Shown here: piece after piece, positions 5,001 to 48,709 of the stretch
Numbering within the stretch: position 1 is the stretch's first letter
How the letters are laid out: each line of letters opens with the position of its first letter
From: Setoptus koraiensis
Lineage: Eukaryota > Animalia > Arthropoda
Assembly (NCBI GenBank): GCA_048013815.1
Contig: CM106585.1
Coordinates: 23,250,001 to 23,314,000 of the forward strand
DNA length: 64,000 nt
Direction of reading: 5' to 3'
Notes under the pieces: generated by a model
What the model was told of the DNA's origin: nothing
Databases searched by the model: none
Seen by the model: only the letters and a program-made list of their open reading frames with translations
Program-made: the position numbers and the translations under genes

Positions 5001-7656
5001 CCAAACATCAGCTATTATAAGATCATTAGCTGGCAAGGATACAAGAGATAAAATCAATCCATACGGAGGGCCAACAAACAGTGAGAATCCTAGCCATTTA
5101 TCGAGTAAACTCAAAAGTGGTAGATTTGTCAATCTGTTTAGGAGATTAAGCGAGCGAACTCCAACGCAAAGTGAACTCGATGGAATTTCCATCAAAAATA
5201 CGAATCCTGACCAAACAATCGATATAAACAAAAGACTTCAAAACAACAGTTCTCTGTTGGTCAAATCTAGTAGGCTCATTCTCAGAAAATCAACATCTTA
5301 CAAGAGTAAAATAGCCAGTCAGCAAGTGTATTCAAATAAGCATTCAAATAGTAAAGAACTTCGTCGCATAGCTTGCATGCCAGACAATTGTTCATCTAAT
5401 TCTGCATGCAATTATAATTCAAAGTATGACTGTAATAACTGGCATCTCAAAAGCGGAGATAGTGCTCGGCCATTAAGTACATCAAGTTTTAATAATTCAC
5501 CTTCTGAGTATTTCCACAAAAAGCAATGTGGACAATTGTGCAAGGATTGGCAACGACCGCAACGGATAAAACAAGGTCAAAATAGAATGCTCAACAAATT
5601 CCTAACAGGTAGTCAGCCTAATCTATCATCACTAGATTGTAAGACTCCAGCGTTAGAGTTGACACGTCAACTGATCTTTTCAACCGCATCGAACGAAGAT
5701 AAAAAACGCCCTCCTTCAATGGCTTCATTGTCTTCTCTACTCAGCATAGTCAAGGACGAGACCAAGGTATTGGATGAATTCGATGCCAGTTATACTTGCC
5801 GTGACGGTAGTAGTAGATGGTATCAAGATTCACTCGAATCTGATGATATCTCTGTTAACAAGGCTATTATAGCAGCTACATTTGATGCTGACCAATTGTA
5901 TGGAAACTCAGAAAAAAGTCACCCTGATTCGGAAAAGTCGTTGAACTATTCTAATGTCAAAACAGTCTCATCATCATCTTCAACATCCGTGTCACCTCAG
6001 CACTTCTCAGGTCAAGCGAATACAACTCTAGTGTGCTGTTCCTCTCCATCTACTTCATTTACTTATCACAGCGATAAAGTAAAACGTTTTTCTACGAAGG
6101 ACCCATTCTGTGGTGTTCCTTCACCTAAAATATGTAACAGCGACACGCATCGCTGTTGTGATCATCAAAGAATAAAACCAGAGATGCACAGGATTGTATC
6201 ACCTAGATCATTGGCACATTCGCAAGAAAACGATCGAGCAAATCCGAGGTTTAGTAAAAAACCTTACGACAAAAAGATAACTTCAATGGCTGAAGCTGAA
6301 CGATACGATGGCAAGTGTCCGCAACATAGATATGATAGTACTGGAGGTTTTGAAATCGAGCGTTATAATCTACTGACAGGTTGCAATGGTCAAGGTTTTC
6401 GCAAAAAAGTACCTACTGATACTTCAAATCTCCAAAGACAAAACGATCAATTGCGATGTATATCGAAGATATCCCAGGAATCCAACTATGATTCAGCTAA
6501 CAAAAACCGCTGTCTATGTCAAAATATAACCGGTCGCTGCGAGCCAAACAACTCTAATCTCGGCCTAAAAGATTTGGAAAAGATTAAAAACTCTGAGCGC
6601 GGTATGCCAACTACGAATGAATCTAGCTTGATGAACTCGATTCAGATAGAAATCCTCCCAAGAGAGAGCTCATTAGGCGCTGTTGAGAGAAGCGAATGCT
6701 CGCAATGTGGTAAACGGTCTGAGAACTTTCAAGTCATTGGCGACAATTTGGTTGAGAAACATTTCAATCTTCATTCATCAACCACATTCCCGGATGAAAA
6801 TATCATGAATAGTTCAAAGACCAACATTATTCATGCACATTGTATTAATAATGGCTTAAATTTTGATAAACATAATGGTCATCAGATTCCTAAGTTACAT
6901 AAATCTAATGGAAGTAATGATTTGCACCGCCAACAGTGCAGCAATGAAAATTTGTCAGCTAAAGAGAGTATGATTAAAAACAATAAACAACTTGGACCAA
7001 GCAAACTTAATGGAAATGTCTCACACCAGGCAAGGTTATCAAGCAAAGATCTAGAGAACAGGGAGTCAAAAAATTTTCCCAAGACATTCAAGGTGGTCAA
7101 TGGCTTGAATCTGTCTCGTCTTAATGGACGTATTGTAGATGGCAGAAAGGACACAGAGGAAATGAACTTCGGCTCAAGAGAAGACTTGGACCAAGCCCAA
7201 ATGACTGAGATGTTGACCAAGCTAATCCCGAAAATGTTGCGATCCAATTCCGAACTTGGACCACATTGGAATAACAACATCAAATTCCAAAATAGTAATC
7301 GATTGTCACCAGTCATAAAATCCAATTATGATAGAGGATACCATCATGATGATGAAGTTATTAGAAATATCATCAAGAATAAATTGAACTCTACACCATC
7401 TGCTCAATCATCAATGAATATTAAGGAGCACATTTCCTCCCGACAATTTGATGACAATTTCATCTTGAAGAGGAAAGTTCCAACTGCTGGTTTAGATCTC
7501 AGAGATCTAAAAAGCACCGAGATAAGCAGCATCAATGACAACGAAACAAATATTATGTGCCATAAAATTAAAAGTGCTATCACCAATACAAACAAATCAA
7601 AAGTAGCTCTCAATATGGAACGACAGTGTCCGTTGCATGGTATAGTCGGACATTGA
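2017..7656 (+). CDS. Uncharacterised 1879-aa Ser/Asn/Gln-rich, probably disordered protein; single exon
   Basis: 5.6-kb stop-free ATG-initiated ORF. N-terminus MGAASS fits the MGxxxS myristoylation consensus. Contains Pro motifs KYRAPAPP and KSAAPSPP and ends in CPLHG. No recognisable folded domain. Confidence 0.8.
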   Translation: MGAASSSTSSTHRSSFASATNPNWFDTSNSQAYSISNAKIGHRRQLPPTINQCNNDNNAFNHTTSDNVPLSRTKFGGSQPSIINYTNVPFSIADDDFNHAAIANSQNIIRNIHNLSPQLQPPPPLLTKPTKSSHINNNDNINHNKIIAVNKNQNKKTSPMVLHYGSSQCLSSQTKMTSQPSLEMLKAQFNGNQRLAKQHQAALDENYGLMMVRHNNQQQFQEQGRNNNSKRSSLLVSAKTNSSKQHPQQQHIDSGNSHEKLIRINRNNKPAVLNKPINFIKPNHPYHNNNGHNVSNKLDHQLQQHKHQQQLCQPIKGTSRSDGSCSLNSNASQSSSTTNSSLANQDLQDQAQYLPSLHHNKRHLASAFSSPNSSNPSSYHYSPSHQSNQGQWRITVQQNQHPKVRPKHTKAYQEKSPEYSDQQNHHQQQQQQQHPYQCNQQVNSFIRKSTSLSSVAAVQNNDVEFCQNNQAQLNTEKQQRQLELHQQQKKQHYHNQPIKSRHFTPHKQTLHKPSEDVSLNQSNSRFRHCKRGGVANQILNRNNREAYKSVLPPLPRTQSLHELIQLRPTENGQNLRTTGTLRGQPSATNVLLSYHFDDDDADNNDDSLVNKHYDDTNIEFDDEHQRRQMGPNKSTLTRSKSQSILNNMEKNAQQRDDDELHQILNRFRKKINDNNYQQKLVSQNYMKTAAAPLNVDHHSSAIDGIIENNKNKRDDSSLSKTSTSSSSINQQQSPTSTSNSTFSSSGFASQGSQSELKSSSTSPSSTITTNHHLSKSSENNQDLPSPSSVSSKFSSPSLALSSSELSVDLKHKNSSSVINSVPQDIDNYESQSENKVASQLKQNTKKNVVTHRVGKYRAPAPPLRLDIGHDTSKNNHKKSAAPSPPVNTSVENEVSKSCSNNSYQFQQQLHSPRNNINLPLNSKLKLSSSLLSIVNEYNSLASDNSLNSFGSQFKLVDPANAKTRCLETRKNMHEDSRRQRQISQSVSSLNTIEDCQTSAIIRSLAGKDTRDKINPYGGPTNSENPSHLSSKLKSGRFVNLFRRLSERTPTQSELDGISIKNTNPDQTIDINKRLQNNSSLLVKSSRLILRKSTSYKSKIASQQVYSNKHSNSKELRRIACMPDNCSSNSACNYNSKYDCNNWHLKSGDSARPLSTSSFNNSPSEYFHKKQCGQLCKDWQRPQRIKQGQNRMLNKFLTGSQPNLSSLDCKTPALELTRQLIFSTASNEDKKRPPSMASLSSLLSIVKDETKVLDEFDASYTCRDGSSRWYQDSLESDDISVNKAIIAATFDADQLYGNSEKSHPDSEKSLNYSNVKTVSSSSSTSVSPQHFSGQANTTLVCCSSPSTSFTYHSDKVKRFSTKDPFCGVPSPKICNSDTHRCCDHQRIKPEMHRIVSPRSLAHSQENDRANPRFSKKPYDKKITSMAEAERYDGKCPQHRYDSTGGFEIERYNLLTGCNGQGFRKKVPTDTSNLQRQNDQLRCISKISQESNYDSANKNRCLCQNITGRCEPNNSNLGLKDLEKIKNSERGMPTTNESSLMNSIQIEILPRESSLGAVERSECSQCGKRSENFQVIGDNLVEKHFNLHSSTTFPDENIMNSSKTNIIHAHCINNGLNFDKHNGHQIPKLHKSNGSNDLHRQQCSNENLSAKESMIKNNKQLGPSKLNGNVSHQARLSSKDLENRESKNFPKTFKVVNGLNLSRLNGRIVDGRKDTEEMNFGSREDLDQAQMTEMLTKLIPKMLRSNSELGPHWNNNIKFQNSNRLSPVIKSNYDRGYHHDDEVIRNIIKNKLNSTPSAQSSMNIKEHISSRQFDDNFILKRKVPTAGLDLRDLKSTEISSINDNETNIMCHKIKSAITNTNKSKVALNMERQCPLHGIVGH

Positions 7657-27335: not shown

Positions 27336-29518
27336 CAGAAATGGTTTAGACGCAAGCCACGCTGAATGCGACTTGCGCTGTCTGGTTGCGCTAGCTCTCA
27401 AATCTGGTTGAGTGTGCCCCTTCGAAACAAAGAAACAACAACCAGCAGACAGACAGATTAGAGCGAAGGAATGAGCGAAAGAATTTGCGAAAGAATTCTT
27501 TCTTTTGCAATACAAACAACGGCCAGACAGTTGTTGCAAACAAACAGAGAATTTGCAAACTCTTGCCATTGTTTTGGAGAAAACTTTGCTTTGTGTTGCT
27601 TCCTTTTTTTTGTCTTTGTTTCGGCTTCGCTCGCTTACTCTTGGCCCGTTTGATCTCATGTGATCTCATTAATATTGGATCATCATCATCATCAACTACC
27701 ACTAACCAGCATCCATGCTTGCCGCTGTGAGCGATCTGGTGCTCTCGAGCCCGGCTCAATTCTGTCACTTTCACACTGTTTTAAGCTGTTGTTGTTACAT
27801 TGCAAATGAGCCAACCAGCAACAAAGAGCCACCCTTTGTCAAGCATACATCATAGCGTTTAGCGAGATTGGTGGGCCCACTTTGTCAGCTTTTATCTGGG
27901 TATCTCGGTGGGTATGCCGGGCATGTTGGTGAGTGGGTACTGGTTGTGATGTAGTAGGCTACAAACAGATGATGCAATGCGATTTGCCAACTAGCAAGTC
28001 CCACGACAGCAGCACCAGCAACGACAACAACAACAACAACAACAGCGGCAACAGCAGCGACGACGACGACGACGATCTAAAGTAGACACACAATTTAATT
28101 GAATTCATCGCAACGCGGTTCCGTATAAATATATACGTGCAGCAAATAGCGCCGTTATATGCAAATTGAGGCCCATGAAAAATTATCCTAGCCTCTGGTG
28201 CGTGCCTATTGGAACGATTTTGCTCTGCTTGTGAGCCGCGCTGGCTGAGCTAAACAAACTCAATAATAATAAACACCATATTTGCACAACAGCCAGCCGG
28301 CCAGCCAAGCGACGAGCCGGTGTTCGTCTCGAACAGGTGTAGTAACGGATGGTTAAACTCGTGTATAAATGCGAGCAACTTTATTGTGTTCAATTTGATA
28401 TTTTATCAATTGAATCGCCTCTAACCAACATGTCAACTCAATGCGTCACCCAACAAAACTACTATTTCTCCTCTACCTAAATACATATAGGTATTCTGTT
28501 CTTTGCCTCGGGCTAGCTCGCAAGCATCATCGCTAACATAATCATCGTGTTAGCTATAATGTAACGTATTTAGTTATGTAATAAGCAACTGTTCAGTCAG
28601 TTTTGAAACATATTTTGACATGTTCACACAAACACGGCGCTTCTAATCATGTATACATAATGATGTTATAAATTGAGCACCGCCACTGCGACTGCTTAGA
28701 CAATTCTTGCTCATTTGGCACTCACGTAGCGCTTGTTTGATGGGCCCAATATTCATTTATCGTCACCATTTTAGCATTCTCACTTAACTCGTGCGCCATT
28801 TCGTGGTCGTTGTGACTCAACTGCAACGCAACACATTTAAATATCGGGATATTTGAATCTGGATATGCTGTTATCTCTGTTTAACTGCTTTAATATTTGC
28901 ACTCTCTCCCTCGATTCTTTTATGCTTATCCATTTGTGCAGGCCGCTGTAGCCGTAGATTGTTGACCATATCAAATATATCGCTATTGGCTGGCGCCGAG
29001 TGAGTCGCCAGAGGATGTCATCGGATCATATTATCATTAATCATTTCTGGTCACAGTGTTTCTTTGGGACGATGTAATGGATCACTGATGTGCGCCATTC
29101 AAATACACACACACACACAAACAAACGACAGCACGAGAAACGAAAATACAAGAGAAGAGATAACAAGAGAAGAGAAACGATAATAAGACATCATTGGCAA
29201 CAATTTGCAAACATTTGGATCATCATTACCAGCCATCGTGAGCTGAATAGGCGGCCGGCGAGTTCAGTTTTGTTCTTGCCCATGGATCGCAACAGATATC
29301 GTTATGGTGGATATTGTTTGTTGGGCATTAAATTGAAAAATATTGATCAAAATATCTCATAACGTTGTATATAAACATTGGAAAACATTGCCAGTTTCAT
29401 CGGTTGCATTATACGGTGGCTCGCTTTTTCTGTTGTAATGTGTGATGTGTTGCATCGACAACCAGTTATCACATACGATAATAACTCCAATGGCCTAACC
29501 AGATATATGACAAGATAA

Positions 29519-29528
29519 CACACACACA

Positions 29529-29569
<41 letters not shown>
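29519..29569. repeat. (CA)n microsatellite just upstream of the kek ORF
   Basis: Directly visible. Confidence 0.95.
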
Positions 29570-29571
<2 letters not shown>

Positions 29572-29606
29572 TTGGAATAGGACGTACGAGCTAGCCAGTA
29601 CCATTA

Positions 29607-32600
29607 ATGGGCCTGCAAACAACAACATTAGATAGAGTGGTGGCGAGCCAGTCGTGGTCGCGCTGCCATTACTACCGATCCAAACGAGTTACAGCGCCCC
29701 ATGACGGCCCGAGAGGCAAAAATAAAAAATTCACTACCGAAACAAGTCAGTTAACCAGTCCAGTCTTGTTAGAAAGAAGTAACAAGGCCGCCGCAAGAGA
29801 GCGCTTGGCTCAATTGAATTTAGACGAAATCGCACCAGAATTAATGCGCCAGCATGGCGATCATTATGGCGGCGATCAGCAGAAGGGGGCCCGCGACGCC
29901 AACGACAACACCAACACCAACAGCAACAGCAGCAACAACAGTGGCAACAACAACAGCAACAACAACAGCAACAACAACATTGCTGGCGTTGGCAAGCGAG
30001 CGCGCAAGGAATCGAGCAGCGGCACGTCTTCATTAGCGATTGTTAGGTTGCAAAATGATGATGATCTCATTACAAGTCAGTTGGTGGCACAACAAATAAA
30101 AGTGACCACAAGTTTGTTGGCGGCGCAACCGCCGGCCAGCACCCAAACCGGTCATGCTAGTCATGTAAAAGAAAGAAGCGATTGTGATCAATGGTGTTAC
30201 GCCATTAGAAATAGAAGAAATAGTTTAGCGACGAGTTGTTGTTGTTGCCGTTGTTGCTGGTGTTGTTGTTCATACAACAACAGCGAGCAACAAGATAAGA
30301 ATAATGGACACTCATTTGATTTATTTTTAAATTTGAAACGAGCGCCATCAAAAAGTTGCCACTGGCCAATTCTGGCCGGTTACAGTTGCTGCTACAACAA
30401 CAACAACAACAACGACAACAGTAGCACCAGCAGCAGTATAATGACACAACAACACCAGCAGCCCACAACAATGCGCCAACAAAGGACACTAGCAACCAAA
30501 TCAGTGGCTAACATGGTCAACCGGCCGCGTGAGCCGGATGCCGGCCAACAGGAAGAGACGCCTCGAAGAAAAAGAAAAAAAGACGCGCCAGGCGAGCATC
30601 AGAGCAGTAGCAGCAGCAGCGATGTTACAGCAACTCGCTTGTTTGACAGTTACAATGGAGTTACGACGCTCACCAGCGCCACCAGTGCCACTAACAGCAT
30701 TAACGACAACGACGACGAGATAAGTTCATTTCGAGCCGACTATAGCGACGTTCGCGACTTTATTCGCCTGCGACACCAGCGACAACTGGCCAGCGCGAGT
30801 CGCTGCCGTCCAGCTGGCCCAATTGGTGACAGCAGCAGCATCATCTACTTGTGTCACTGTGTATTGCATGTTATGCTCATGTTGCAAATCACCACCAACA
30901 GTGTTCGTGTTGTCGCGGGCAATAATGATTGCCGGCGTTGCCCGAACTGTTCAGTTGATTCAGTTGGTGGCCTCAGCGATCAAGTGATATCAATCTCGGC
31001 GTGTCCATTGTATCAGCCTGGCCAATTTATGTTTGCTGGCCAACATAAATGGCCCCCTGTTGTTGTTGTTGTTGTTGCTGTTGCTGTTGTTGTGGCCGCT
31101 GTTGCTGTTGTAGCAGCAGTGTGTCCAATTGGCAGCAACAAAAAGAAACACTGTTATTGTTGTCCGACGATAATTCGCAATCACTTTATCGATTGTCACA
31201 GCAGACATAAACATGCCACTGGTAAACAAAGAGATAATGGTGACAGCGAGGCCACAATTAAAATCGACGCACAACTGCCTCCCTTCCAGCACCAGCAACA
31301 ACAACAACTACTAAAGCAACGACAACTGCAGCAACAACAACAAAAGCGACAGCAACAACGACAGCCCGCTCGCCGTTGCTCTGGCGGCGTTATCGTGAGC
31401 CCAACAACGAGTGTTGCCTCGATTTATCCTTCAAGTTATCATTATTACGCAACAGCATTAGTGAGATTAACGGGCGCAAATGATGATGGCAAAATTAACG
31501 GTCAAGCGGCCTCATGTCGCAATCATATTGTTCACGTAGAAAACTTGCCACTTAGGATAGGATTACAAATAGACAATAAAAAGCGGAGCAGCATTGGTTG
31601 TTGTTATCATTACAACGACAACAACAGTGCCTTGCTCACAACGATAATTACCCGACATTACAAGTGGCTAAACCGTCCCAATCAACCACTGATATTGGCA
31701 ATTCACTATTGGTCAGTTGCGCAGCGAGACAGTGATAGCAACAACAGCAGCAGCAACAACAGCAGCGGCAACAACAACGACAACAACAGAAGCAACAACA
31801 ACCGTCCATATGCGACACTGAACGATACGATTGTTGTGCAGCGATTGATTTTTAAGCGCCGTCTCGGCAACGAGCGACCATCTTTCAATGATATTGCTTG
31901 TAACATTTCAGACTGTGTCATGAGTGTCGGACATTGTTGCACTGGTTACAATCTGGTTCGTGCGAAACGACCAAATAACCCCGAATTTGTTATGAGAGGA
32001 ATGGTGGAAAAAGTTTCGTTTGCGATAATTGCCAGTGCAACGTTGATTGTGTTTGCGATAAAAGTAATAGCAACATCGCCAGAGAAAGTAACGGCAACAG
32101 CAACAGCAACAGCTCCAGCAAAAGCAACGGCAACATCGCCAGAGAGGCCCCGACCAAAGAATTCTTCACAACTCTATGTATTGTTCAATGTTGATGAATT
32201 GCTAATGTTGCCGCTGTTACCATTTGTCCACTGCCACAACAACAACAACAACAATTGCGCGCGTTGTTGTTTTATCTCCATTGAGGCCACTACAAACCAT
32301 TTGTGCATTTCATTAGCCACCACTGTCACACTGCGCCAGACTGCAACTAGATTACGGGTGATGCACACGACAACAACGGCACCAACAACAACAGCGACGA
32401 CAACAGCGACGACAACAGCGACAACAACAACGCCAACAACAACCAGCCAAACTCGTGCAATTGGTAGGCACAGAATAAGCGCGCCTGCTGATCAGAGAAC
32501 AATTACGCCACTGGCAACAATGGTAATGGCAAACAGTAGTAAAGTGGCGCCGCCATCGGCCAATGTAAAACAAACGCCGATGAAGTGTCAGTTATCAAGT

Positions 32601-35600
32601 CATCCGACTGCGTTGCGCAATATCCGCTACAATGGCCCCAACTGGTCAGCTAAACAAGACGACGACGGCGACGACGAGCAGCAAATGCGACAGAAGCGCC
32701 ATCGCAATGTCGCTCGCATACGTAGACGGAATAAATTGTGCAAAGTGACCATTGTTGCGCAACAGCAGCAACAACAACAGCACCAACAACAGCACCAACA
32801 ACAGCACCAACAACAACAGCGCCAACAACCACAGCCGAGTGGGCCTGTGTGGCGATGGCACTGCTGTGCAAGTTTGCACCAGTTGGCGGCGAGCATTAGA
32901 TATGGTCAGCAGCATCGCCATCATTATCAGTGCGACTATCAGTGTTGGGGGGATTATTCAAGCCAGCAAGCGGGCCAGTTAAACGACAATTTCAAATTGG
33001 TCCCATTGGCCTCGTTGGGCCCCATTGACCAGTGGTTGCTATTCACTTTTTTCATTGTGTTGTTGCTAGTGTCGGCGCTGCAGCTTGCAACAATGACAAA
33101 TTACATGGTGGTGATTTGTTGTTGTTGTTGCTGTTGTTGCTATTGTTGTTATGTCTCATGTTGGCGCATTTCATCGCGCCCGTTCTGCTCGCGACACTTG
33201 AAGTATCTGAAAAACTGTCCCAAAACTACAAGTGAAACAAGTGATTGTGTTGAAAAACTACAATTGATGCGATTGGTCAAAAATGCTGATATAACGATTG
33301 TGATTTTAGTTGCCTTTGCCACACAAAACAACAAACTCAATGGTGCAAGAGATAACAACAAAGGTAATATTGACATGCTGATGAGCGTATCGCTAACATG
33401 TCGTCAGCGCAAGAGCCAACAACAAAAATCAACGCCAACAACAGCAACCATGCAGCGGGCTGGCAAGCTTGCGCGTGCCAGTGCAGCTCGTGACAGCTCG
33501 TGCGATACCGTTACACAAACCGTTGCAGAGATTACGGGACAATACAAACAACAAAACAAACAAATGTTTAATGGAATATTGGCCACTCAAACAACAACGA
33601 CAAGCAATCACTGTCAACTGTCCAAGACAATTACAATCTATTTGTTGTTATTCTATTTTTTATCTCTGTTGGCCACAACAAACAATTGCCAATGTCAAAC
33701 ATACAACAATATAGTTTTTCTCGACCAGCTGACTACTAATGACCAACTGGCCAATAATGACCAACTGTCCAATAATAATGCCCAATTGCCCAATAACGGC
33801 CATTTGCCCGAGGGACAAATGAGACAACAGCCCACAACAGAGACCACCACACCAGCCAGCGGCCAACAACACAACCAACTGCACAACAAGCACCACCAAT
33901 GGAAGCAACTGCAACAACCAACCAATAAATCACCATTAAACATTGCAATTGGGGCCCCATCACACACTGTGAATGCATCATTTTCTGAGGGGCTGGCGAT
34001 CGTGCAAGAGCAAGCAAAAGCGCGCGTTGTTTGGTCAAGCAGAGCAGCATCACTAATCGAGTCGGACAAAGATGCAAACAGCTATGGACAGATAGTTGAC
34101 AATTCGAGTCACAAGCAATTTGTGCACGACAACAACAATACAGCTCAATGTTATTGGCTGATAGCTGAACAACCACGCGACAACAACACCGTTATCAGTG
34201 CCAATGATGGTTGCCATGCGATCGGTGACGAGAAGGTGCAATTGGGCTCATCATTGGTGCCCTTGGCACAATTAATTGTTCAATTATGCAATAAATGTGC
34301 CCAAGAGCAACTCGTGAGAAACGCAACCAGCAGTAACAACAACAACAACAACAACAACAACAACGACGACGGCAACAACGACGACAACAACAGCGACAAC
34401 AACGGCAACAACAACAACGACGGCAACAACAACAACAGCGACGGTGCGACCGTGCCAGTCGCCGATAAAACAAACCGGAAAAGATCGACAACCGGCGAGA
34501 AATCATTCGAGTTTGAGTCACTTCTTCGACATTACGTAAGCGGAACAGCGACAAACACAGGCCAAAAAGAACGGGTTAAAAGTGGCAACACAAAACAAAA
34601 CAACGACAGCGCCGTGATTTGTGTTGTTATGGTTGTATCAAAACAACATCAAAAATGCATCTATGTATCCATTGGTACTGGACAGAATGACACCAAACTT
34701 ATTGATGAAACTGCTGTGAGGCGCCACCAGAGAGTTAGAGCACTAATTGAAAGTGGGCCAAAATCAGCCACTAACGAGTTGCTGACCAATTTGCTGCAAC
34801 AAGCCACGACTCTTAGCAGCAGAAGCAGCGGGCATGGTTATCGTGATTTGCATGACTACACTCAGGCTGTGCCAGTTGATGGGGCCCTCAGTGGGCCTCA
34901 CATCGATGGCTGGCTAGCCAGTGAACTCGAAAATTCAACTGAGCTCTGGCTGAGGGCGCATTTCAGCGCCAGCGATGGCGCTAGTGGCAGCGCCAGTTGT
35001 GATAGATTGTGCTACCGTGTTTGCTGTTTCTTTTCACCTGATCAAGCGAATCAATCAAACAGCAATATAATTAAGTCTGTTACAGCTAATCATGTAACGA
35101 TCAATTTGTTTGTGTCGCCGTTGCTTGCATCATCGTTGCCTTATTATCATTGGCCGGTGACGGCAGCACGGCGCACAATATTGTCCACGTCTGCACGTGC
35201 TGCTACGACAACTACTAACCAGGAAACCAACTATCACCACACTGCTACTGCTGCCACCACCAAAGACACTACATCTACCAAAAATTCCGCACACACTGCA
35301 TTCGGTGCAAAGAGCGAGCGGCATATAGGACAGCGTCTCAAGCGACCACATCGGGCCAACGATGTACGTGTTTCTCTAGTCACTTCCGGTCAACATGACA
35401 CTACTTCCGTTTCAAATCATGCCAAAGCTAAATTGAGGCCATGGGTGATGGGCTGGAATGGCCGGCAGTGGCAGTGGCAGTGGCAGCTTGCTCCCCTAAG
35501 TCAGCACCGGAGAGTCACAAGATCGGCTGTGTCAGCGGGACATCGCTCAAATAAGCAGCTAGTTAAACAGAATCGTTTGCGAGACACAACGACGTCCACC

Positions 35601-35893
35601 TCTAATTGTCCCAGTTATTGCAATTGTGTTTGGAAGAGCGGAAAGTTGTCAGCTGATTGCTCAAATAATATATTGGCTTTACGGGCACAACAACCAACAA
35701 CAACAAGCTCAAATTTAACTACAACTGCCAACTACCAGCGCCAACAACTAGCAACAACAGCCAGCATTATTCCGGACAATCTTGACCAATTAACGCAAAT
35801 AATGAATCTAACACAAAACCATTATCCGCTGCTCGGTATAAGTGCCTTTTCCGCCAAGGGCTACATTCATTTGCAGCGTATCTACTTGTCCAG
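29607..35893 (+). CDS. kek: Kekkon-family LRR-Ig receptor, coding exon 1 (long low-complexity N-terminus, LRR-NT, LRR1-2); true start uncertain (29607 or 33564)
   Basis: The 3' end encodes CPSYCNCVWKSGKLSADC..IPDNLDQLTQIMNLTQN..HLQRIYLSR, the Kekkon LRR-NT/LRR signature. It ends at an AG|GTGAGT phase-2 donor. Confidence is high for the 3' part and lower for the 5' part. Confidence 0.75.
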
Positions 35894-36375
35894 GTGAGTG
35901 GCGCCCACTATTACTCATACAACTAATCTGACGTCGTTTGTGATAGACATGTGAGATATGTGAGGCCGGACTCTATTGTTTTAGCTCGAACACGTTCATT
36001 ATTGGCGCCCCAATGAGCGGCCCCAAGCGGCCGAAATCCTCGCCTTAGGCACAATGTGCGCATTTTGGGTTGTTGCTGCTACAGCAGCAGCAACAATTGC
36101 AATTCGCCATTGATAAGTGGATATCAGACACTCGCAGCTATGGCGCCATTGTGGTGCTATATGGCGCTGCCTGGCGAACGGTGCTGCAAAAACACGTGGC
36201 AAGAGCACGTCCTCCTCGAGGCCTCCAATCTGATTCAATTAGGCAATCAATCTCTCCGGCATGAACTAGATGATGTTGCGCGTGTGTGACTAGTGACTTA
36301 TTTGCAAGCCAGCGCGCGCATATCGGCTAGCTGCAGTTGATCCATTTAAGTGAGTGACGCCTCTCAAGAGGCCAC

Positions 36376-36445
36376 CCATACCCCCATACAGCCATACCCC
36401 CATACAGCCATACCCCCATACAGCCATACCCCCATACAACCATAC
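36376..36445. repeat. 16-nt minisatellite (GCCATACCCCCATACA) x about 4
   Basis: Tandem copies are visible in kek intron 1. Confidence 0.9.
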
Positions 36446-37479
36446 GATCATGCAGCCAAAGATCCGTGGGCCACATAGCGACGTTCGCGCACTTGAGAAA
36501 TTCACAATGAGAATATCAGTTACGTAATGCGCGTACACGCTGTCTAGTGTGGGCGGTGTTTGATTTTTGCCGTCGTTCAGGTTTTTTTTTTTATCAGGCC
36601 TCGCTCGCTGGATCGTTGACTGGCTCGTTAGTTGGCGTTGTTGTTGCTGTTGTTTTCGCTGATGGTTTGCCCCCACTAACGATAGCTGCGCGCGTTCTGT
36701 GCTGATGGGGTCGTGACGCGAGCAGATTATCCGCACTGCCAGCAGATAATGCAGCAACATCAACAACGGCCGGCCGGCCGGCCTCGATTGGCCTCACATC
36801 ATCGCATGTATGAGCGTATGTGGGCGCGTATTGCGCCAACATGCAGTTGTGTACATTGAGGTCAGCTCACTTTCATTCTTGGTATATACTTAGAATTTAT
36901 TCAGGCGAGCACGATATTGATGCGCATAAAGTTATTAGTGGGGCACAGTTGAAAGTTGCAAGTTATAAAAAGACACACAACATCAGTGATTATCAATGAA
37001 TTAGTGGCGGATCTGTTTGTGTGCGCCCCAATCAATTTCTGTGCGGATAAAACTGTGTGAGCGGATAAAATAAAATTGAAAGAAAAAAAAAAATAGCAGG
37101 CATAGAAAAAAGTTTTACCAGCCGCCAGCTGCCTAATAAGTTGGTGTATGTATAGTTGGCGGCTTATAGCCGCTGGCTGAACTTCATCGTATCATTTTAA
37201 ATTAATATCAGCTGGCAGTGCAAGCAATCATCAACTGTATTTAGTTGGTCGCTAATTAATCTATGAGAACTATTAAATCGAACAACATCCTTAGCTCCAT
37301 CTCACAAAACAACATTTTGTCTTCGGATAACAGATGCCGTGGCTATTAACAAATACTCAGCTGACAAGCCATTAGAGTCCGGCGACAACTGTGAGACGAT
37401 CGAGCAGTTATTCTAATGCAATCTCGAGATAAACAATTAGTAGATAACTTATCTTCGGTATCATTCAATAACTATCAGT

Positions 37480-38000
37480 GAGAACAGAAACGATTTTCGT
37501 GAAATTCGAACGTCGGATTCTTCGGTTTTTGCTCGTGGAATCGGGTATCCAGATCATTTTGGAACAGTTTTGGGTTTTTTCGAATCACAAAAGACCGAGT
37601 CAACTGTGCCCATTCTCATCTAGCTGAGGCGTGGTATGGAAGACTCCAGAAAAAGTCAACCGATTTTTCGGGTTGTATGACAGTGTGGTGTGACAGGTGT
37701 GTGACACGAAAGGGCGAAACTGGGTGATTTGGGTACATTTGAAAGGCTCCAAATGATGCATTCAGATAGGCCTAAGTGAACTATTGGCACTATTGGCTTA
37801 AGTGTGAAATCTCAGATTTGTTTTATCACCAGAAAAATTTCTAGCCAGCTCTGTTGTCGTAAACAATTGTCAGCTGCTCATCAATGCACTTATTCATGAT
37901 AGGTGTGGTGCCAACTTTCAACCAAAAAGGAGATGTGTTTTCGTCCGAAATATTCTCAACACTGATATTGAAATCGTGGACAATGCAACTTGCTATAAAA
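37480..38000. mobile_element. Probable non-autonomous DNA-transposon relic in kek intron 1
   Basis: The sequence style differs from the flanking intron (T/A runs, no microsatellites, CATTTGAAAG motif). It shares 18/19 nt (37950-37968) with the hairpin arm at 10383-10401. No transposase or TSD was identified. Confidence 0.3.
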
Positions 38001-38054
38001 GCGTCTCAATTTGTGTTTGCATCTCTGTTTTCTGTATTATCCGTGTTACATTAG

Positions 38055-39853
38055 GTGCCAAATGAGAGACATTCACGCCCACGCTTTCGATAATTTACGT
38101 CTATTGGTTGAACTGGATCTATCATGGAATCTATTGACCATGGTGCCATTGGACAGCCTTAAAGACAGAAAGCTGTTACGTAAGTTGAGCATGCGTGGTA
38201 ATCCATTGAAAATGTTGGATCGTTCAACATTGCGACTATCATCATGGTCGCAGCACAATAAATCAAAGCAACAGCGGACACACGAATCAGAGGCAGAATC
38301 ACTAGCAGAAGATAATTCAATCACGGCAACAGCAGCAAAAGTAACGAAAATAAATAGCTCATACAATGGCCTGACTACTTCCGGTGAGCAAGCGGCAAAT
38401 GAGGTGAATGCAGGCAGTGGCCACCAGGGGGAAATAACGAGTCGCGGGTTGTCGTCGATATCATCTAGTGACACTGGCAATGATGATGCGCCCGCATCAT
38501 CTCAAATGGTCAGCTCAGCAAATGTAATATCGTCATCATCATCATCAAACAAGCAGCAGCAGCAGCAAATAGCAGCCGATGTATTGGACAATTCATTTGA
38601 CAACAACAACAGCAACGATATCGGTGGCTCACATCCTGTTGAGAGCAGCAATGCGAACAACAACAGGAAGTCAGATTTGCGATTGTTGTATGTGAATCAT
38701 TATTGGGCGCAAGCGGACTATTTAAGCTCGTCCAACCAGCCAGCGGCATCAATATCGTCGTCGTTGTTGGACGGCAGCGCCGATAACGGTAACAACGGCG
38801 ACAACGACGACCAAACCAACTGGACGCAAGAGACGGGCCCCGGCCAACGGCAGCCAGAGCAAACAACGGGTCCCAGCAGCGACCAATTTCAATTGAAACT
38901 ACAATTGATGGCCTTATCTGTGGCCTTAGACAATCAACTGCTGCGAGCCAGTGCGCAGCCAATGGGGTCGCAAGCAAGCGGCCAACCAAAAAACAACGCA
39001 TCGGCCAACAGCGCCGACAATAAGCTTGCTGTGATATTGAATAACGTTGGCAATAATGACATCGACTACAACTATTACGCAAACAACGATAATACGTACG
39101 CCAATGGTAATGGCAATTATCAGCAGCACTACCAATGGTCTATTGGGCACTATTTAAACGAGCTGCAAGAGCTAGATTTCGGCCAATGCCAGCTGGCATA
39201 CATACAACCGGAAGTGTTTTATCAATTAACACAATTGAAAAGATTATTGCTAGATGGAAACAGATTGCAGTATATAAGCGCTCGTTTAATATTAAATCTG
39301 CCGGACAATATGCACCAATTGGCTTTAGAGGACAATTTATGGTATTGCGACTGCAGATTGTTTCCAGTTAAATCCTGGCTGGATAGCACGAAAATCCCGC
39401 TGGGCGTCGGGCCCCGCTGTCACATGCCCAACAGCGGCAACAGCGGCACCAACAACGGCAATGGTAGCGGCAACAACGACGACGCCAATACAGATGCGGC
39501 CAATCAGCAGAAACAAGTGGCCCATTTACGGGATTGGTCCCAATTGAGGGCCCAGCAATTGGCGTGTGCGCCGGTGCCCGTGCCCGTGACCGAGCCCGAG
39601 CGATCGGGCGCGCCAATGATAGCGGCGGATAATGGGGCCCGACAAGACATTGATTTGTTGAGCGCAAAAATGTTTACCGATACCGGCGACAAAATGACGA
39701 CATTCTCTCAAGAGCACAAAATGGTCGTATCGTCTGACACTATAATGGCCGCCATGCTTTATCCGGGGCCGGCAAGAGGCGCGTATAATTTGAAAGCAAA
39801 CAGTGGCGCCAACACAAGTGCAATTAATGGCGCCACTCAAGTGGCCAAAGAAG
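38055..39853 (+). CDS. kek: Kekkon-family receptor, coding exon 2 (LRR2-7, LRR-CT)
   Basis: A TAG acceptor in phase 2 gives R-CQMRDIHAHAFDNLRLLVELDLSWNLL. Later LQELDFGQCQL, LKRLLLDGNRL and LEDNLWYCDCRL follow. The exon ends at a G|GTAAGT phase-1 donor. Confidence 0.92.
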
Positions 39854-41588
39854 GTAAGTCGCGCGACTCGCAAACTGGTGGCGAGCACTTGAAGTAGATA
39901 TTTCCAACAAACTGCATGTGGCTAATGTTTAATTTCTGACAAAATGAAGCCATAGGTGCGACGAGATAACGGCAGAGATTGTGTGACAGATTATTTCTCG
40001 CGGCCACTCGCCAGCGTTTCGGCCAGTTTAAAGCGTCAGCCAGCCGGCGTGTCGGCGAGCTAGCCAGAGATAATGCGACAGAGCCAGAGAGAGCGGCCCC
40101 TGTCGACGGCCACTCTGTTGCCAGCATGTATGTTGTGTCTATTTTTAGGCGGCGCCGCTGGCGGCGTTATCTTGGCGCGGCGCGATGATACAACAGCGTT
40201 ACGTCATCACGGCAGCGGACAGCGATGCAATTCGGGTATTGTTGCACCGAGTTGAGTGTGCTATTTATTTCGTTGCGGGCTCGGTATCGGAACGGAACGG
40301 AACAGAGCGGTGCGGCGCGGAGCTGGCCCGTGGCTAGACGAGGTCAGTTGAACGGTGACAATTGTGAAAATTGCCGCTCATTGCACGTGCTCGTGGCGAC
40401 CGTCATCAAGATGGCCGCCAGCCAGCCAGCCAGCAGCAGCTGATGTATGGGGCCGGGCCGGTGATTTAAGCCGAGTGCCCCGTGCTCATCTCATTTCGTG
40501 GGCTCATCAGCGCACCAGCGCATCAGCGCATCAGCTCGCCGTCGCGTCAGCTCGCCGTTGCGTCAACTCATCAGCTCAGCGGCGGCAGTGACGGCGTCCA
40601 CTCAACAACTCAACAACTCAGCCAGCTCAAATGGGCCCCCCCGCAAGAGCGCGTCTGGGCAAACTGGATCAATTCAACACGACACACGTTTTGTGCATGC
40701 TGTCACCGCGCACTCCATACCGTATGATTGGCGACTGGCCACAATGGGGGCCCGTCGTGTATCCGCTCAGCAGCGGCCGGCATCGGGGCCCACTGAGCAG
40801 CGGCTGACATCTTGTCACGAGTAGTCGACTGCTCGAGTGCATGTGTCGCTGGCGCACCGATTGCCTAATCAGCACGGAAAGGAGGCCACTTTGTGCACTG
40901 ACATACCCAGACCCAGACCCAGACACATACACTGTGCGCATATGCTTGTTAGAACGGTGCTGCACTGAGTACACCTGTACACCCAGCAATACTGGGCCAG
41001 CATACCCAGCGTACCCAGCAATACTGGCCCAGTATTGCTGGGTACGCTGGGCCAGTAGTATTGGTGAACCGGCCCGCAAGTGGCCCGGGCGCGCCTTGCA
41101 GCAGAACATTTAATGGGGCCCCACAATGGATGGCTCGCTCGACACTGACAACACCGCCGACTGGTTCAATTTTATTTGGCCTATCCGCCTATCTTATTGG
41201 CGACAGACTTAACAATGTCGCCCACTAAGACATAGGTCAGCGGCGAGGCACAGACGCACAGACGCATAAGGCACGAGCCGGATTAAACTAGCTGAGCAGT
41301 GCGCTTGCAGTTCTTTTCGCCTTCGCCTTGCCATCTCTACACGCCGGCAAAGGCGCCCCAATCGCTCTCGCTCTCTCTCCAGGTAACTTTGCACGTAATA
41401 ATGTGTTTATAGCTTTGTACCTGTAAACACATGCGCCAGCAGCAAGTGGAGCTTGCTTGAGCTCCCATTCTATTAATTATAATGGCAAGCGATGATGGCA
41501 AGACGGCGCCTCAGTGGGGCCGAATAAATAAGTAGCCAAGTAATTGGATCGTATGCAACCGTGGGCAAGATTTATGCACACACACACA

Positions 41589-41657
41589 CACACTTGTTAT
41601 AAGGCACAGTTGTTATATGGCACACTTGTTATATGGCACAGTTGTTATATGGCACAG
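41589..41657. repeat. 16-nt minisatellite (CACASTTGTTATAWGG) x4
   Basis: Tandem copies are visible in kek intron 2. Confidence 0.9.
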
Positions 41658-44241
41658 GGGGCGATCGCACAATTGGACAAGACACCGCCAGCGCCACCAT
41701 AATAGTAGTGGCACTATCACGGCACTACTATTAGGTGGTAGCACCAGACTGTAGATCCACACTGGATCTCCTGTGTAGAACCACCAAAGGCCCACTCACC
41801 TGTCGCCTGGCTACTTGACTTGTCTTGACGCGCGCAATTGTAAATAACGGTACTTGCGCAACAACGGCTAGCCGTGCAAAATGGGGGCCGCTGCCGAGGC
41901 CACGTTCCACTGGTCGCAATCGTCGATTTGCTTTGCTTTGCTTTGAGCGCCCCCAATGTTGCAAAACCGACAAGCGACGGATCCTCAAATCAACTCACCT
42001 TTAAAAGGCTTCCCCCATTTCGCGCGCTCTTAATCTGTTTTGAACACACACACACACACCGTTTGGGGTCACGCGCTGCGACCCAACAAAGACTCGTCGC
42101 GCAACCAAAAAGAGGCGCACCGACCCACAACTGAGACTGGCCCACTTTTTATGCCCATTTGCATATCCGCTTATTACGCCATAATATAGTGAATAACATT
42201 GGCAAGACATTGGCCTATTACAAGTGTGCACTGTCGCTGGTTGTGGTGGCTTTTTTGGCTAGACACACTCACTGTTGCAACTCACTGCAATACGACGCAC
42301 AGTTGCGCCCCGAGGCTTTACAACACGGCCAACTTTGTTGTTGACCAAATGTCATTACATGCCATCTATATATTGCAGCGGCAGCGGCACCAGCAACGGC
42401 CTATTACATATTACATGCATGTGCTTGTTGTTACATAACAACTATAATAACGTTATAATCCGTTATAATCAGCGCCAATATGATTAGTGAGTAGTGTAGT
42501 ACATATTAATTATGTACTGCTCACTGTTACTGTTCAATGTGATGCCAGCAGTAGTGTCTCGTATTTTCCTATTTTGTTTGTTTGCTGATCAAGAGAAGCC
42601 AAGCAAGCGACAATTGCCACTGTCCACTGGTGACCGTTCACCTCAACTAACACAAACAACAATCACTGTTGTGATATTCACAGGTGAACGATTCTTGTTT
42701 GAATTTACAGCATGTTATGCTGCAAATTGGAAATAAGCTCATGCAAATTCAAGCCATGCAAGTACATGTAAACAATGTAATGTAACGTGTATACAATGTG
42801 TGAAAATTCGGCTCAACTGAAACCAAATCATCATCAATTAGTGAGAGTTGAGGCAAGCTCAGGTGAATTGGCTCGCGACAAGCGTCAGACGATAGCTTCA
42901 AAAGAATGATCGACAGAGCCGACAGTTTCCGCCAGTCGCACAATACCAACCGCACTCCCATGCTCCCGTTGGGAGAGTAATGGGAGTGAATAAGGAAAGA
43001 TATGTAGTATTATGTAACAAGTTTGCTGTCGTTTGTATGTATATCACAGTGTGTGTTTGTGTGCTGAGTTGTCACGCGTTATTAGGTCACGCGATAACTA
43101 AATAACTGATGAGAAATACTGACAATACATAACTTTTTACTGTTGTTACTGTAAATGTAACTGTTATGTGTGATAAAATGTAACTTGTACAAATGTTACT
43201 GTGTTTGTGACTAATATCACTGGACAATAGCAAATTATAAATATTGGCCATTTACAAGTGATTAGACTGCAGCTGTCAGCTGACTGAGATCATGAATGTC
43301 GGATGCTCAATACTGGCCAATGCTGCCAATTGGCCATGTGTGAGGCCACAAATCACCAGCCTAATCATGCTACAATGAGCACGTAATCCGTTCATCAAAC
43401 ATTGGTCTTGACTGGCCACAAACTACTTCTTTATCTTACATCATATATCTTTATCCAGATGAAAGCTAGCTGAGGGTTAAAGTTGGCTATTGTGCTCACT
43501 CGCAAGCACCACTGATATTCTCTCTCTCTCTCTCTCTCTCACCGGCGAGTCATTTGTTGATGTCGTTAGATCCGCGGTGAGGCGCCATAACTCTGCTATA
43601 GTGCGCCAAGTCGATAGGTGTCACACGTCATATGTATTGCCTGTATTTTTAATACAAAATGATATAAATGGTTTTTATTCCAATTAGGTTCTAATTTGGT
43701 TCAGGCCAAGCGACACAAAAATCATTTCGTCCATGCTATGATAGCCGGTTTAGCGACAAGATAGATTCAGAAATCGATATTGTCTGTGCCTTTTATCCTC
43801 ATATATCACGCGCCATAGTGAAGCAACCATATTTGACATTCTCCAAATATCTGTTGGCGTACAATTTATATTTTATATACGCATGCCTGAATGGAGCCAG
43901 TTGGCTCGTATTGGAGCCAACAAATCAGCATCTTCGGACACACAACGATGCAAACGATTGTCGCCGTGACTCTCAATAACGACGCACCAGGTGAAGTATG
44001 CCAGGCCTAGATCGGTTAGGCCGGCCATTGTGATTAATTGTTGGCGTCAGGTCGTTGACGAAAAACAGAGGCTTCAAATTAGTGCCACTCACTGAGTCCA
44101 ACAGAGAGCCAAACCAGTTTCTGTTGGTGCGCCAGTTTGGCACCTTTCATGCATATCTATGGGCATGGTATGATGCTGTGAGCGCCGGTGAAACGTGAAA
44201 CGGAAGTGAAAGCCGACACACGAGTCGCGGCGAGAGTGACT

Positions 44242-46363: not shown

Positions 46364-46802
46364 ATGAGCCGGTCACTCTCAGTTGCCGGTTCGCCTCCAT
46401 TCCGCTGATGGACATTATGTGGACAGTTGAATACGGAGCCCCGTCGGAGCCCCTTCAAGAGGGCGCCACTGGCTGGCAGGCGGCCAGGCAGCAGCAAGCG
46501 ACAACTCAGGTGCTCTTTGACGGCGCCCAAAGCCAACCGGCCAAAATGGGTGGCGCCAAATTGAGGCCAGCAGCCTCAATTGATGGCGAAACTATTAAGT
46601 GGGCCACATCAAGACAACCGTTGCTGGACGGACCCGACGCCGCTTACCAGCAACAACAGCAGCAACAACAGCAGCAACAACAACAACAACCACGCATTGT
46701 TTTGTCCGGCTTGCGCATAACCGTTCGCGAGACACTCTTCGGGTTGGATCAGAAAGAGTCAGCACTAACAATAGACAAATTGACCATTTTGGACGCCGGC
46801 AG
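46364..46802 (+). CDS. kek: Kekkon-family receptor, coding exon 3 (Ig domain)
   Basis: A CAG acceptor in phase 1 gives DEPVTLSCRFASIPLMDIMW (Ig B-strand Cys, C-strand Trp) through ESALTIDKLTILDAG. The exon ends at an AG|GTGAGT phase-2 donor. Confidence 0.88.
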
Positions 46803-47943
46803 GTGAGTTATACACACACATATAAACTGTTGTTGTTAGTTTATTTTGGGCGCGCGCTTGTTGTTGTTTCGCCAACAACAAAATGCGCCGCGTTTTGTTG
46901 TTGGCGCTATAAACACTCGGCCTCGAGAACGGACGCGCCAACACCAACGCCAGTTGTAAGCAAACGGATAGACACAATCGGCGGCAGCAGCAGCTTTGCT
47001 TTGTTATAATGTTGTTGTGTTATAATGCTATAATGGGGCCAATTTTAAATTTAAAGTGGCGCATAAATGGTTAAGAAGTGGCCCCTGGCGTTAGTAAATA
47101 GATGGCCGAAACACATAGCGGCACATGGCAGCTCAGCGGTTGTTAGATGGTTGGCCAAAGTGCAATTTTGTTGCTGAAAAATGAGCGGGCCAGTGGCGCA
47201 ATTGCGACCACGCTTACACGCGAGACAGATAAGAAGCCATGAGAGAAGAATGCCAGTGGACGCGAACTCTTTGCTCTTTCTTATTGGCTCATCTCGATAT
47301 TATTTTTAAGCAAATTATTATTGTTGGCCCCGGCGAGTCAGTTGCCCGGTTGAGGCTCGCAGTGGGGCCCGCGCTTGATCCAGTAGCCGGCAGGCCGTCG
47401 ATCGAGTGCAAACACAATAGTTGATAATGATGCTAAGCTCGCCCTAGGCGCCCTGGCCCCCTCTTCGCCTGGCTCCCTTCACCTTCCATTCTGGCCGACA
47501 AATTCTCGGGCTCGTGATCCAATAATGGCCGGCGCTTAGATGTTGCGCCAAATGTCACTGAGTGGCGCAAATTGGCCCGTTATTATCTTGGATTATTCAC
47601 CTATTCGCACACATGACGGGCTTACTGATCAGCAAGAGAAATATTGCCCGATACGCGGCCCGACACGCCGAGCGGGTGAGGTGCACAGGGTGCACGGGAT
47701 GCCTCACAGCCGCATACTGCGGGTCCGCATACCATGGTACCACCATACGCTTGCACACGCCCACGGTATGGGCTAGCCGCATATGGTGGTGCGCATATTG
47801 CGGATTGCGGGCCAAGCTTGGCTTCGATTGTCACTCAAATTGTATCTCGCGTGCAGTATCCATCGGAACGAAATTCAGCAATCATATCTGCATGTGAGGT
47901 GGCAATTTTGTCTAATGCTATGTGTCTAAACTGGAGCGAGACG

Positions 47944-48048: not shown

Positions 48049-48709
48049 GCATGGGTGTGTGCCATTGGGGCACCGGCAGCAGCCCCAAAAGAGAGATGGG
48101 CCCCGTGGAACGGAAAGCGAAATTTGGCGCTACTTTGAGTTTTGTGCGCTGCGGGCAGATCCCCATTGAGTCAACTTCATCCATCACAACAAGTGCATTA
48201 GTTTATTTAATCCAGCTCGGCAACATTTTTGCCATCTCTATCCATCATAATTATCCAGCCTGAGTCAGTGGTTAGTGAGTCTATCTGTGTGTGTGTGTGA
48301 CTATGAAAATTGCAATGTTATCCATACATACTTATTCGCGAGCTCGATCCGTCCCGAAATTCGAATGTATTATCACGGTATTGGGGCCCGCACACTCGCA
48401 CACATTTTAATGCCCAATCGCAACCTAATCCATTCCATCCATCAACTAATAACAAAGCGAACGTGCTGTATGGTCTTGTTACCGCATTACCGCATCACTG
48501 GCTGCCATCTTTTTGTTCTTTTATTCGCACAAAAAAAAGTAAAACCAAAACCGAGAGCAGAGACGAGAAAGGCAAAAACGAAGGCAAAAAAAAACAAAAA
48601 GCGCATACCGAAAACCTGAGAGCGAGTAGCGAAAAACAGAAAGCAGAATAAAAATTTAACGTAATCTCTTTTGATCATTGTCCATAAATTACGTTGTCAC
48701 TAACTATAG

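Follow-up and report, generated by a model that had tools for sequence, protein, structure and literature searches.

A probable 2,000-codon coding leader constrained in reading frame only, in the first exon of a Kekkon-like receptor gene of Setoptus koraiensis

Introduction

Kekkon and LIG proteins are type I receptors that consist of an LRR-NT, leucine-rich repeats (LRRs), an LRR-CT, one Ig domain, a transmembrane (TM) helix and a cytoplasmic tail. A probable gene of this kind lies in the stretch of DNA analysed here, a window of 64,000 nucleotides from Setoptus koraiensis (GenBank assembly GCA_048013815.1, contig CM106585.1, positions 23,250,001 to 23,314,000 of the forward strand; positions given below are those of the window and refer to its + strand unless stated otherwise). 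The window gene resembles Kekkon and LIG in its LRR-NT cysteine cluster and its LRR_8 match and, further downstream, in an LRR-CT motif, a putative Ig domain end, a TM helix and an extended tail. It differs from them in that no cleavable signal peptide is present directly before the LRR-NT, where 2,000 in-frame codons, hereafter referred to as the leader, are found instead, and in that large low-complexity inserts occur in the LRR-NT and between LRRs.

Three described phenomena come close to such a leader. Neutrally evolving low-complexity insertions in coding sequence are a feature of the proteomes of Plasmodium falciparum and Dictyostelium. Like these, the leader is in frame, shows triplet slippage and cannot be aligned between species, and it would be tolerated because nothing but its frame matters. 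Unlike them, it is an N-terminal block of 1,250 to 2,000 residues that precedes the secretory targeting signal of a receptor; besides, the leaders of two of the three species described below are not microsatellite-like, and hydrophobic and poly-Cys tracts are included. Internal signal sequences occur in polyproteins and in type II and type III membrane proteins and, by analogy, a hydrophobic core far inside the window protein could engage the translocon and be cut by signal peptidase. In contrast to those systems, several more cores lie further upstream in the leader at positions that are not conserved, and cleavage is here predicted only.

N-terminally extended proteoforms usually carry extensions of tens of residues and are usually minor isoforms. 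The leader is similar to these extensions in that an upstream in-frame start adds residues ahead of the canonical N-terminus, but it amounts to thousands of residues and appears obligatory, because the 94 ATGs that it contains in its three frames together preclude scanning past it. For the same reason it cannot be a scanned 5' untranslated region. Human cases of extended proteoforms translated from 5' leaders have been described (PMC11317171). The Setoptus koraiensis assembly is described as comprising 47 Mb in two chromosomes (PMC11920263), and term searches of this and two further eriophyoid genome papers (PMC7738191 and bioRxiv 10.64898/2026.08.24.746826) returned no mention of such leaders. 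What makes the leader unusual is its size, its placement before a secretory receptor and its persistence across species.

Results

An open frame of 2,100 codons runs into the LRR-NT exon

The initial annotation of this stretch, which was made from the sequence alone, had described a frame free of stops from 29607 to the LRR-NT. We found the frame to be open from 29595 to 35897, that is, for 2,100 codons from stop to stop. No internal stop is present in this frame. The other two + frames contain 96 and 112, and on the - strand there are 85, 92 and 83 in the respective frames, in agreement with the rate of about one stop per 20 codons that had been expected of non-coding DNA. The described extent needed correction at one end only: the frame is open up to the LRR-NT but does not end there, since it runs on through the LRR-NT and the first LRR until it meets a consensus donor (cag/gtgagt) at 35894/35895. 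Its terminal TGA (35895-35897) sits inside the GTGAGT of the intron. On the upstream side the frame is closed by an in-frame TAG (29592-29594), and its first ATG (29607-29609), the probable start codon, follows four codons later. A candidate splice acceptor at 28941, which had been put forward for the same exon, is irrelevant to coding because of the in-frame stop at 29592.

The leader itself (29607-35606) thus comprises 2,000 codons, and the first Cys of the LRR-NT is residue 2001, with its codon at 35607. The leader is free of stops, contains repeats with periods that are multiples of three only, has a weak codon signal and shows neither a Pfam domain nor detectable relatives. After the period-3 repeats (811 nt) were masked, 1,721 codons remained with no stop, as against 85 and 103 stops in the two remaining + frames. 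Among 300 dinucleotide-preserving shuffles, the longest open frames were on average 155 and at most 334 codons long and, given the off-frame stop rate of 0.050, the natural logarithm of the probability that such a frame contains no stop (ln P) is approximately -107.

The base composition changes where the frame begins. At 29600, close to the first ATG, the GC content rises from ca. 0.40 to ca. 0.49 and the A>T skew from ca. 0 to +0.33. Both values drop again in intron 1 and climb again in exon 2, and the pattern of the leader is that of the other exons of the gene. The boundary is also marked by a non-coding (AC)26 dinucleotide microsatellite (29518-29569; Tandem Repeats Finder, TRF) that adjoins the open frame upstream. 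A TATATAAA motif is present at 29368-29375 (+), approximately 235 nt 5' of the ATG at 29607, and could serve as the core promoter of a transcript whose start would lie just 5' of the leader.

Two further species keep the frame open and have replaced the sequence

Relatives of the gene were sought by an exhaustive HMMER search of public contigs with residues 897-2096 as the query. Among the seven weak matches, three were of low complexity and the other four were to the LRR-NT exon. One of the latter, the predicted protein P0001, is encoded by a 1,352-residue open reading frame (ORF) on a 10.7-kb Logan contig (L001; SRR33927557). Its last 103 residues correspond to the LRR-NT exon and end in LQRIYLSR, as do those of the window species, and a protein search with P0001 matched only P0001 itself. 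Another match, P0004, was located on a 1.5-kb contig. By way of its exon-2 product, longer contigs were reached in two sister runs, L003 (SRR11671911) and L004 (SRR11671912), which are 100% identical. Word-index protein searches with the entire ORF of the window gene's leader exon and with residues 1640-2096 returned no match among at most 8,000 candidates each, a number that was exhausted by low-complexity words. The window gene, L001 and L003 have in common the position and phase of the donor after the first LRR as well as the insert site among the LRRs and, because of these shared features, the three genes were treated as orthologues. The L001 and L003 contigs are genomic and not cDNA, since the intron is retained. 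The lineages of L001 and L003, together with the window species, are probably eriophyoid mites.

In L001 the frame is open for 1,370 codons (2035-6147 of the contig) with no stop, as compared to 57 and 63 stops in the remaining + frames and 49, 40 and 43 on the - strand, and the GC content and the A>T skew likewise step up at the start of the frame. In L003 and L004 the frame ahead of the LRR-NT comprises at least 1,265 open codons and reaches the end of the contig, again with no stop, while the other five frames contain 38, 46, 26, 49 and 33. The values of ln P are approximately -107, -62 and -43 for the window species, L001 and L003, respectively, in three independent assemblies that differ in technology.

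The leaders themselves are not alike. Local alignments between the leaders of the three species scored z values of 1.3 to 2.0 above shuffles, which is not significant, and BLASTP aligned the LRR-NT only, plus a faint tail of 45 residues upstream of it between L001 and L003. The comparison of species that the initial annotation had proposed therefore turned out in its favour: both orthologues keep the frame open over dissimilar and evidently replaced sequence, as its idea of a frame held open by selection while the content drifts had anticipated. In two outgroup contigs from metagenomes (L005 and L006), a signal peptide stands directly before the LRR-NT, and an in-frame stop is found 8 and 18 codons, respectively, upstream of the start. 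Only vestiges are seen in L001 and L003 at the place where the outgroups have the core of the signal peptide (alignment A1).

The leader has the repeat spectrum of an exon and a weak codon signal

The tandem arrays that TRF detected inside the frame almost all have periods that are multiples of three, while arrays of 2-, 8- and 16-mers are found in the introns. The 6.0 kb of the leader contain no homopolymer of at least 8 nt, no dinucleotide array and no tetranucleotide array, and forward CAA-type arrays outnumber reverse ones by 18:4. In the 22.8 kb of non-coding DNA of the window (flanks and introns), there are nine such homopolymers, nine dinucleotide and eight tetranucleotide arrays, and the CAA-type ratio is 5:7; for the bona fide coding regions of the window, pooled to 17.4 kb, the corresponding values are one, zero, zero and 18:4. 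From the density in non-coding DNA, approximately seven frameshift-prone arrays would be expected in the leader, and none was observed. Two poly-Cys tracts (30234-30272 and 33117-33165) and a hydrophobic tract (31059-31122) had been explained as CAA-type arrays read in reverse orientation. TRF and the translation confirm this explanation for all three. The third, which had been called poly-Val, is a Val/Ala tract (residues 485-505) and the most hydrophobic segment of the leader.

Codon usage was scored with stops excluded. Frame 0 was the best frame in 13 of 25 windows of the leader, compared to 7 of 7 and 12 of 12 windows of the downstream exons, and the advantage over the whole leader was +0.024 per codon, as against +0.07 to +0.09 in the low-complexity parts of exons 2 and 4. 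The frame-0 score exceeded that of the other frames in all six leader segments taken from the three species, by +0.019 to +0.067 (null standard deviation 0.02), and in all three species Asp and Glu are more frequent and Lys and Arg less frequent in frame 0 than in the other two + frames. No consistent difference in codon signal was seen between the proximal and the distal leader. Searches with the leader gave no match in Pfam and no usable match in the Atlas, and the content of the leader is barely protein-like. An origin by internal duplication or from a transposable element was rejected, since a self-BLAST of the leader against the window returned microsatellite matches only.

Hydrophobic cores in the leader

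As had been noted, the N-terminus carries no signal peptide: no hydrophobic segment lies near Met1, and the first strong one begins at residue 485. The initial annotation had regarded Met1320 as the start of the best signal peptide. This Met is indeed located at 33564 and is followed by a hydrophobic segment (33564-33680, core at about residue 1342, 657 residues before the LRR-NT), but the segment is one of about eight hydrophobic cores in the leader, and no counterpart of it that has a start codon is conserved. A furin-like RVTR sequence said to precede the LRR-NT is present at about 35511; it is, however, one of 13 RxxR motifs, where eight are expected by chance, and is absent from this place in both orthologues. 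The idea of a furin site was rejected on these two grounds, the chance-level frequency of RxxR and its lack of conservation. The leader contains no 2A-like NPGP motif. A multi-pass N-terminus, which had also been proposed, was dropped as a conserved architecture because no significant cross-correlation was obtained between the leaders in hydropathy.

In the window species, no hydrophobic core is found within the last 330 residues ahead of the LRR-NT. The nearest one, AVICVVMVV (34608-34640), lies 333 residues upstream of the LRR-NT, and the nearest cores of L001 and L003 lie at similar distances of 320 and 300 residues. The Met associated with this core is found 326 (window species), 323 (L001) and 303 (L003) residues before the LRR-NT. 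The core 300 to 333 residues upstream, which is present in all three species, is the best candidate for a signal sequence.

Discussion

For three independent stop-free frames of 1,265 to 2,100 codons, each contiguous with the same conserved exon, reading by ribosomes appears to be the one reasonable cause. We assign a rough probability of 0.68 to the reading that the leader belongs to the coding sequence of exon 1 of an LRR-Ig gene, that it is constrained in frame only while its content drifts, and that it is shared by at least three species. The comparison of the three genes shows, at the level of sequence, the mark of purifying selection that removes stops and frameshifts from the leader, because these would cut off the receptor, whose coding sequence follows in frame further downstream. 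Selection on the amino-acid sequence appears to be almost nil; the sequence would therefore drift and be reshaped by triplet-repeat slippage. As judged from its distribution, the long-leader arrangement is old enough to be found in at least three divergent related species, and the leader appears to be an extreme case of neutral in-frame inflation.

Under this reading, translation would begin at the ATG at 29607 or close by. The ancestral signal peptide that adjoined the LRR-NT would have decayed, and the protein would be targeted to the membrane via an internal hydrophobic segment, most likely the one 300 to 333 residues before the LRR-NT. This segment would act as an internal signal or a signal-anchor and may be cleaved as in viral polyproteins, and the remaining 900 to 1,700 residues upstream would form a head in the cytosol, mostly disordered and without a role that depends on its sequence.

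Several observations weigh against translation of the whole leader as part of the receptor. Its codon signal of ca. +0.02 is low in comparison with the +0.05 to +0.17 of the bona fide exons of the same gene, low-complexity inserts included, and the recognition score of a protein language model is 882 for residues 1-896, as against 1451 for the last exon and 2300 for typical known families. A polypeptide with poly-Cys and poly-Val tracts and several scattered hydrophobic cores would be an awkward one, and membrane segments that drift ought to disturb the topology of the receptor, while the hydropathy profiles gave no significant cross-correlation among the three leaders. The shared position of the core is suggestive, but it is a post-hoc match with a P of approximately 0.01 that was estimated and not computed, on the assumption of one hydrophobic core per 250 to 300 residues. 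Furthermore, the core of the window species has no Met in front of it, the Met being inside the 9-residue core, whereas in L001 and L003 the core is directly preceded by a Met and resembles a normal signal peptide. The two Met-led cores would fit an internal start.

An internal start of transcription or translation at that Met is accordingly the main rival. Two products would then arise from one exon: a short mRNA that begins inside the exon would give the receptor with a normal, cleaved signal peptide from the Met ca. 300 to 326 residues before the LRR-NT, and a long mRNA from an upstream promoter would give a second protein with an N-terminal extension, whose role, or the harm done by its truncation, would keep the distal frame open. 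The textbook look of the Met-led cores at -320 in L001 and -300 in L003 favours this arrangement, as does the similar distance from core to LRR-NT in the three species. In the window species, however, a start at the Met within the 9-residue core would leave no signal peptide. The arrangement also leaves unexplained why 900 to 1,700 non-conserved distal codons should matter, and it does not account for the proximal and the distal leader being alike in codon signal. We therefore regard it as unlikely.

A position of the leader in intronic or intergenic DNA is considerably less probable still. A first exon with the signal peptide would lie further upstream and be joined to an acceptor just before the LRR-NT, and the open frame would be a nested or alternative coding unit. 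In many arthropod LRR-Ig genes the signal peptide is indeed on a separate 5' exon, and an AG is present at 35569-35570. This AG, however, has no pyrimidine tract, the neighbouring genes are intronless and a separate unit would need a stop of its own, whereas in three species the frame enters the LRR-NT without one. That the leader is untranslated DNA, open by chance, through mutational bias, through very recent origin from stop-free microsatellites or as an assembly artefact, would suit its likeness to the surrounding repeat-rich DNA, its weak codon signal and its low language-model score, but is very improbable in view of the ln P values in three independent assemblies, of the other five frames, which with about one stop per 20 codons are far from pure repeats, and of an A>T skew and a repeat-type census that match those of exons.

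Returning to the reading of the leader as a translated part of the receptor exon, a type I receptor would be made behind 1,250 to 2,000 effectively random residues in three lineages. If translated, the leader would challenge the usual view that secretory proteins need a signal near the N-terminus, and it would provide a natural example of selection that acts on nothing but the reading frame, as well as a natural test of the amount of junk that a protein targeted to the translocon tolerates. The leader also bears on the question of how coding sequences come to be inflated in genomes that are otherwise extremely streamlined. It further serves as a warning to annotators that gene models of these mites may miss thousands of codons if they start at a conserved domain. 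A broader proposal, which we consider doubtful, is that eriophyoid mites possess a class of frame-constrained, kilobase-long leaders before secretory or membrane receptors, and that the translated leaders would be shed at an internal signal sequence, as a polyprotein-like mode of biogenesis or as a translational throttle. If this were true, it would represent an undescribed route of receptor biogenesis that has long been maintained even though the leader sequence carries no information.

Remaining exons of the receptor gene

The leader shares its exon and frame with the LRR-NT cysteine cluster and the first LRR (35607-35894; alignment A1). The cluster has the form C-x3-C-x-C followed by a further C, and its Cys, Pro and Trp columns are invariant between the window species and four relatives in A1. 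A 30-residue low-complexity insert lies within the LRR-NT, after the fourth Cys and ahead of the first LRR (35650-35770, +); it is found in the window species and L001 and is absent from L003 and the outgroups. Intron 1 (35895-38054) is of phase 2, begins with GTGAGT and ends with a pyrimidine tract and TTAG, and its position and phase are equal in L001 and L003. The LRR reads on over the junction of exons 1 and 2. Exon 2 (38055-39894, the 3' limit being provisional) encodes LRRs, a low-complexity insert and the LRR-CT (Pfam LRR_8, E = 1.1e-11). The insert comprises approximately 290 residues (38280-39180, +) and is located between two LRRs; its counterparts, which are found between the same two LRRs, comprise ca. 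200 residues in L001 (6700-7250 of the contig) and ca. 130 in L003 (ca. 4050-4420). The insert site is old, while conservation does not extend to the sequence of the insert. The 6.5-kb intron after exon 2 contains a GC-rich block (0.56) at 40000-42000 with tandem arrays of 8- and 16-mers and no long ORF.

A probable exon read by eye at approximately 46408-46806 would encode the first part of the Ig domain. The last exon (48700-51659, the 5' limit being approximate) was read directly and encodes the putative end of the Ig domain (YQC...G), a TM helix of 24 hydrophobic residues and a long low-complexity cytoplasmic tail, with ca. 850 residues following the helix. The Y-x-C motif of the F strand and a W-containing strand were recognised by eye, while Pfam gave no match to the exon pieces, which were searched singly. 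In the presumed Ig exon the expected position of the B-strand Cys reads KLRPAAS, with no Cys by eye, and either the Ig disulfide may have been lost or the limits of the exon may be wrong. Taken together, the domains stand in the order typical of a Kekkon-like (LRR-Ig) receptor of type I, an assignment made by architecture.

Neighbouring features of the window

The neighbouring genes, which encode a DDX10-like helicase, a beta-1,3-galactosyltransferase, Ndr, an HflX-like GTPase and an acyltransferase, each consist of one uninterrupted ORF. The single-exon galactosyltransferase gene (52746-54458, -) contains an in-frame run of ca. 20 Gln codons inside the Galactosyl_T domain. In-frame inflation is thus seen elsewhere in the window, in the LRR inserts and in this poly-Gln insert. 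A scaffold gap of 500 N is located at approximately 56000-58000, in very AT-rich flanks (GC 0.27). An ORF at 2017-7653 (+) encodes 1,879 residues that are rich in Ser, Asn and Gln and match no Pfam domain. Unlike that of the leader, its codon usage is clear, with frame 0 the best frame in 21 of 24 windows. Its product starts with MGAAS, a possible myristoylation signal by its sequence.

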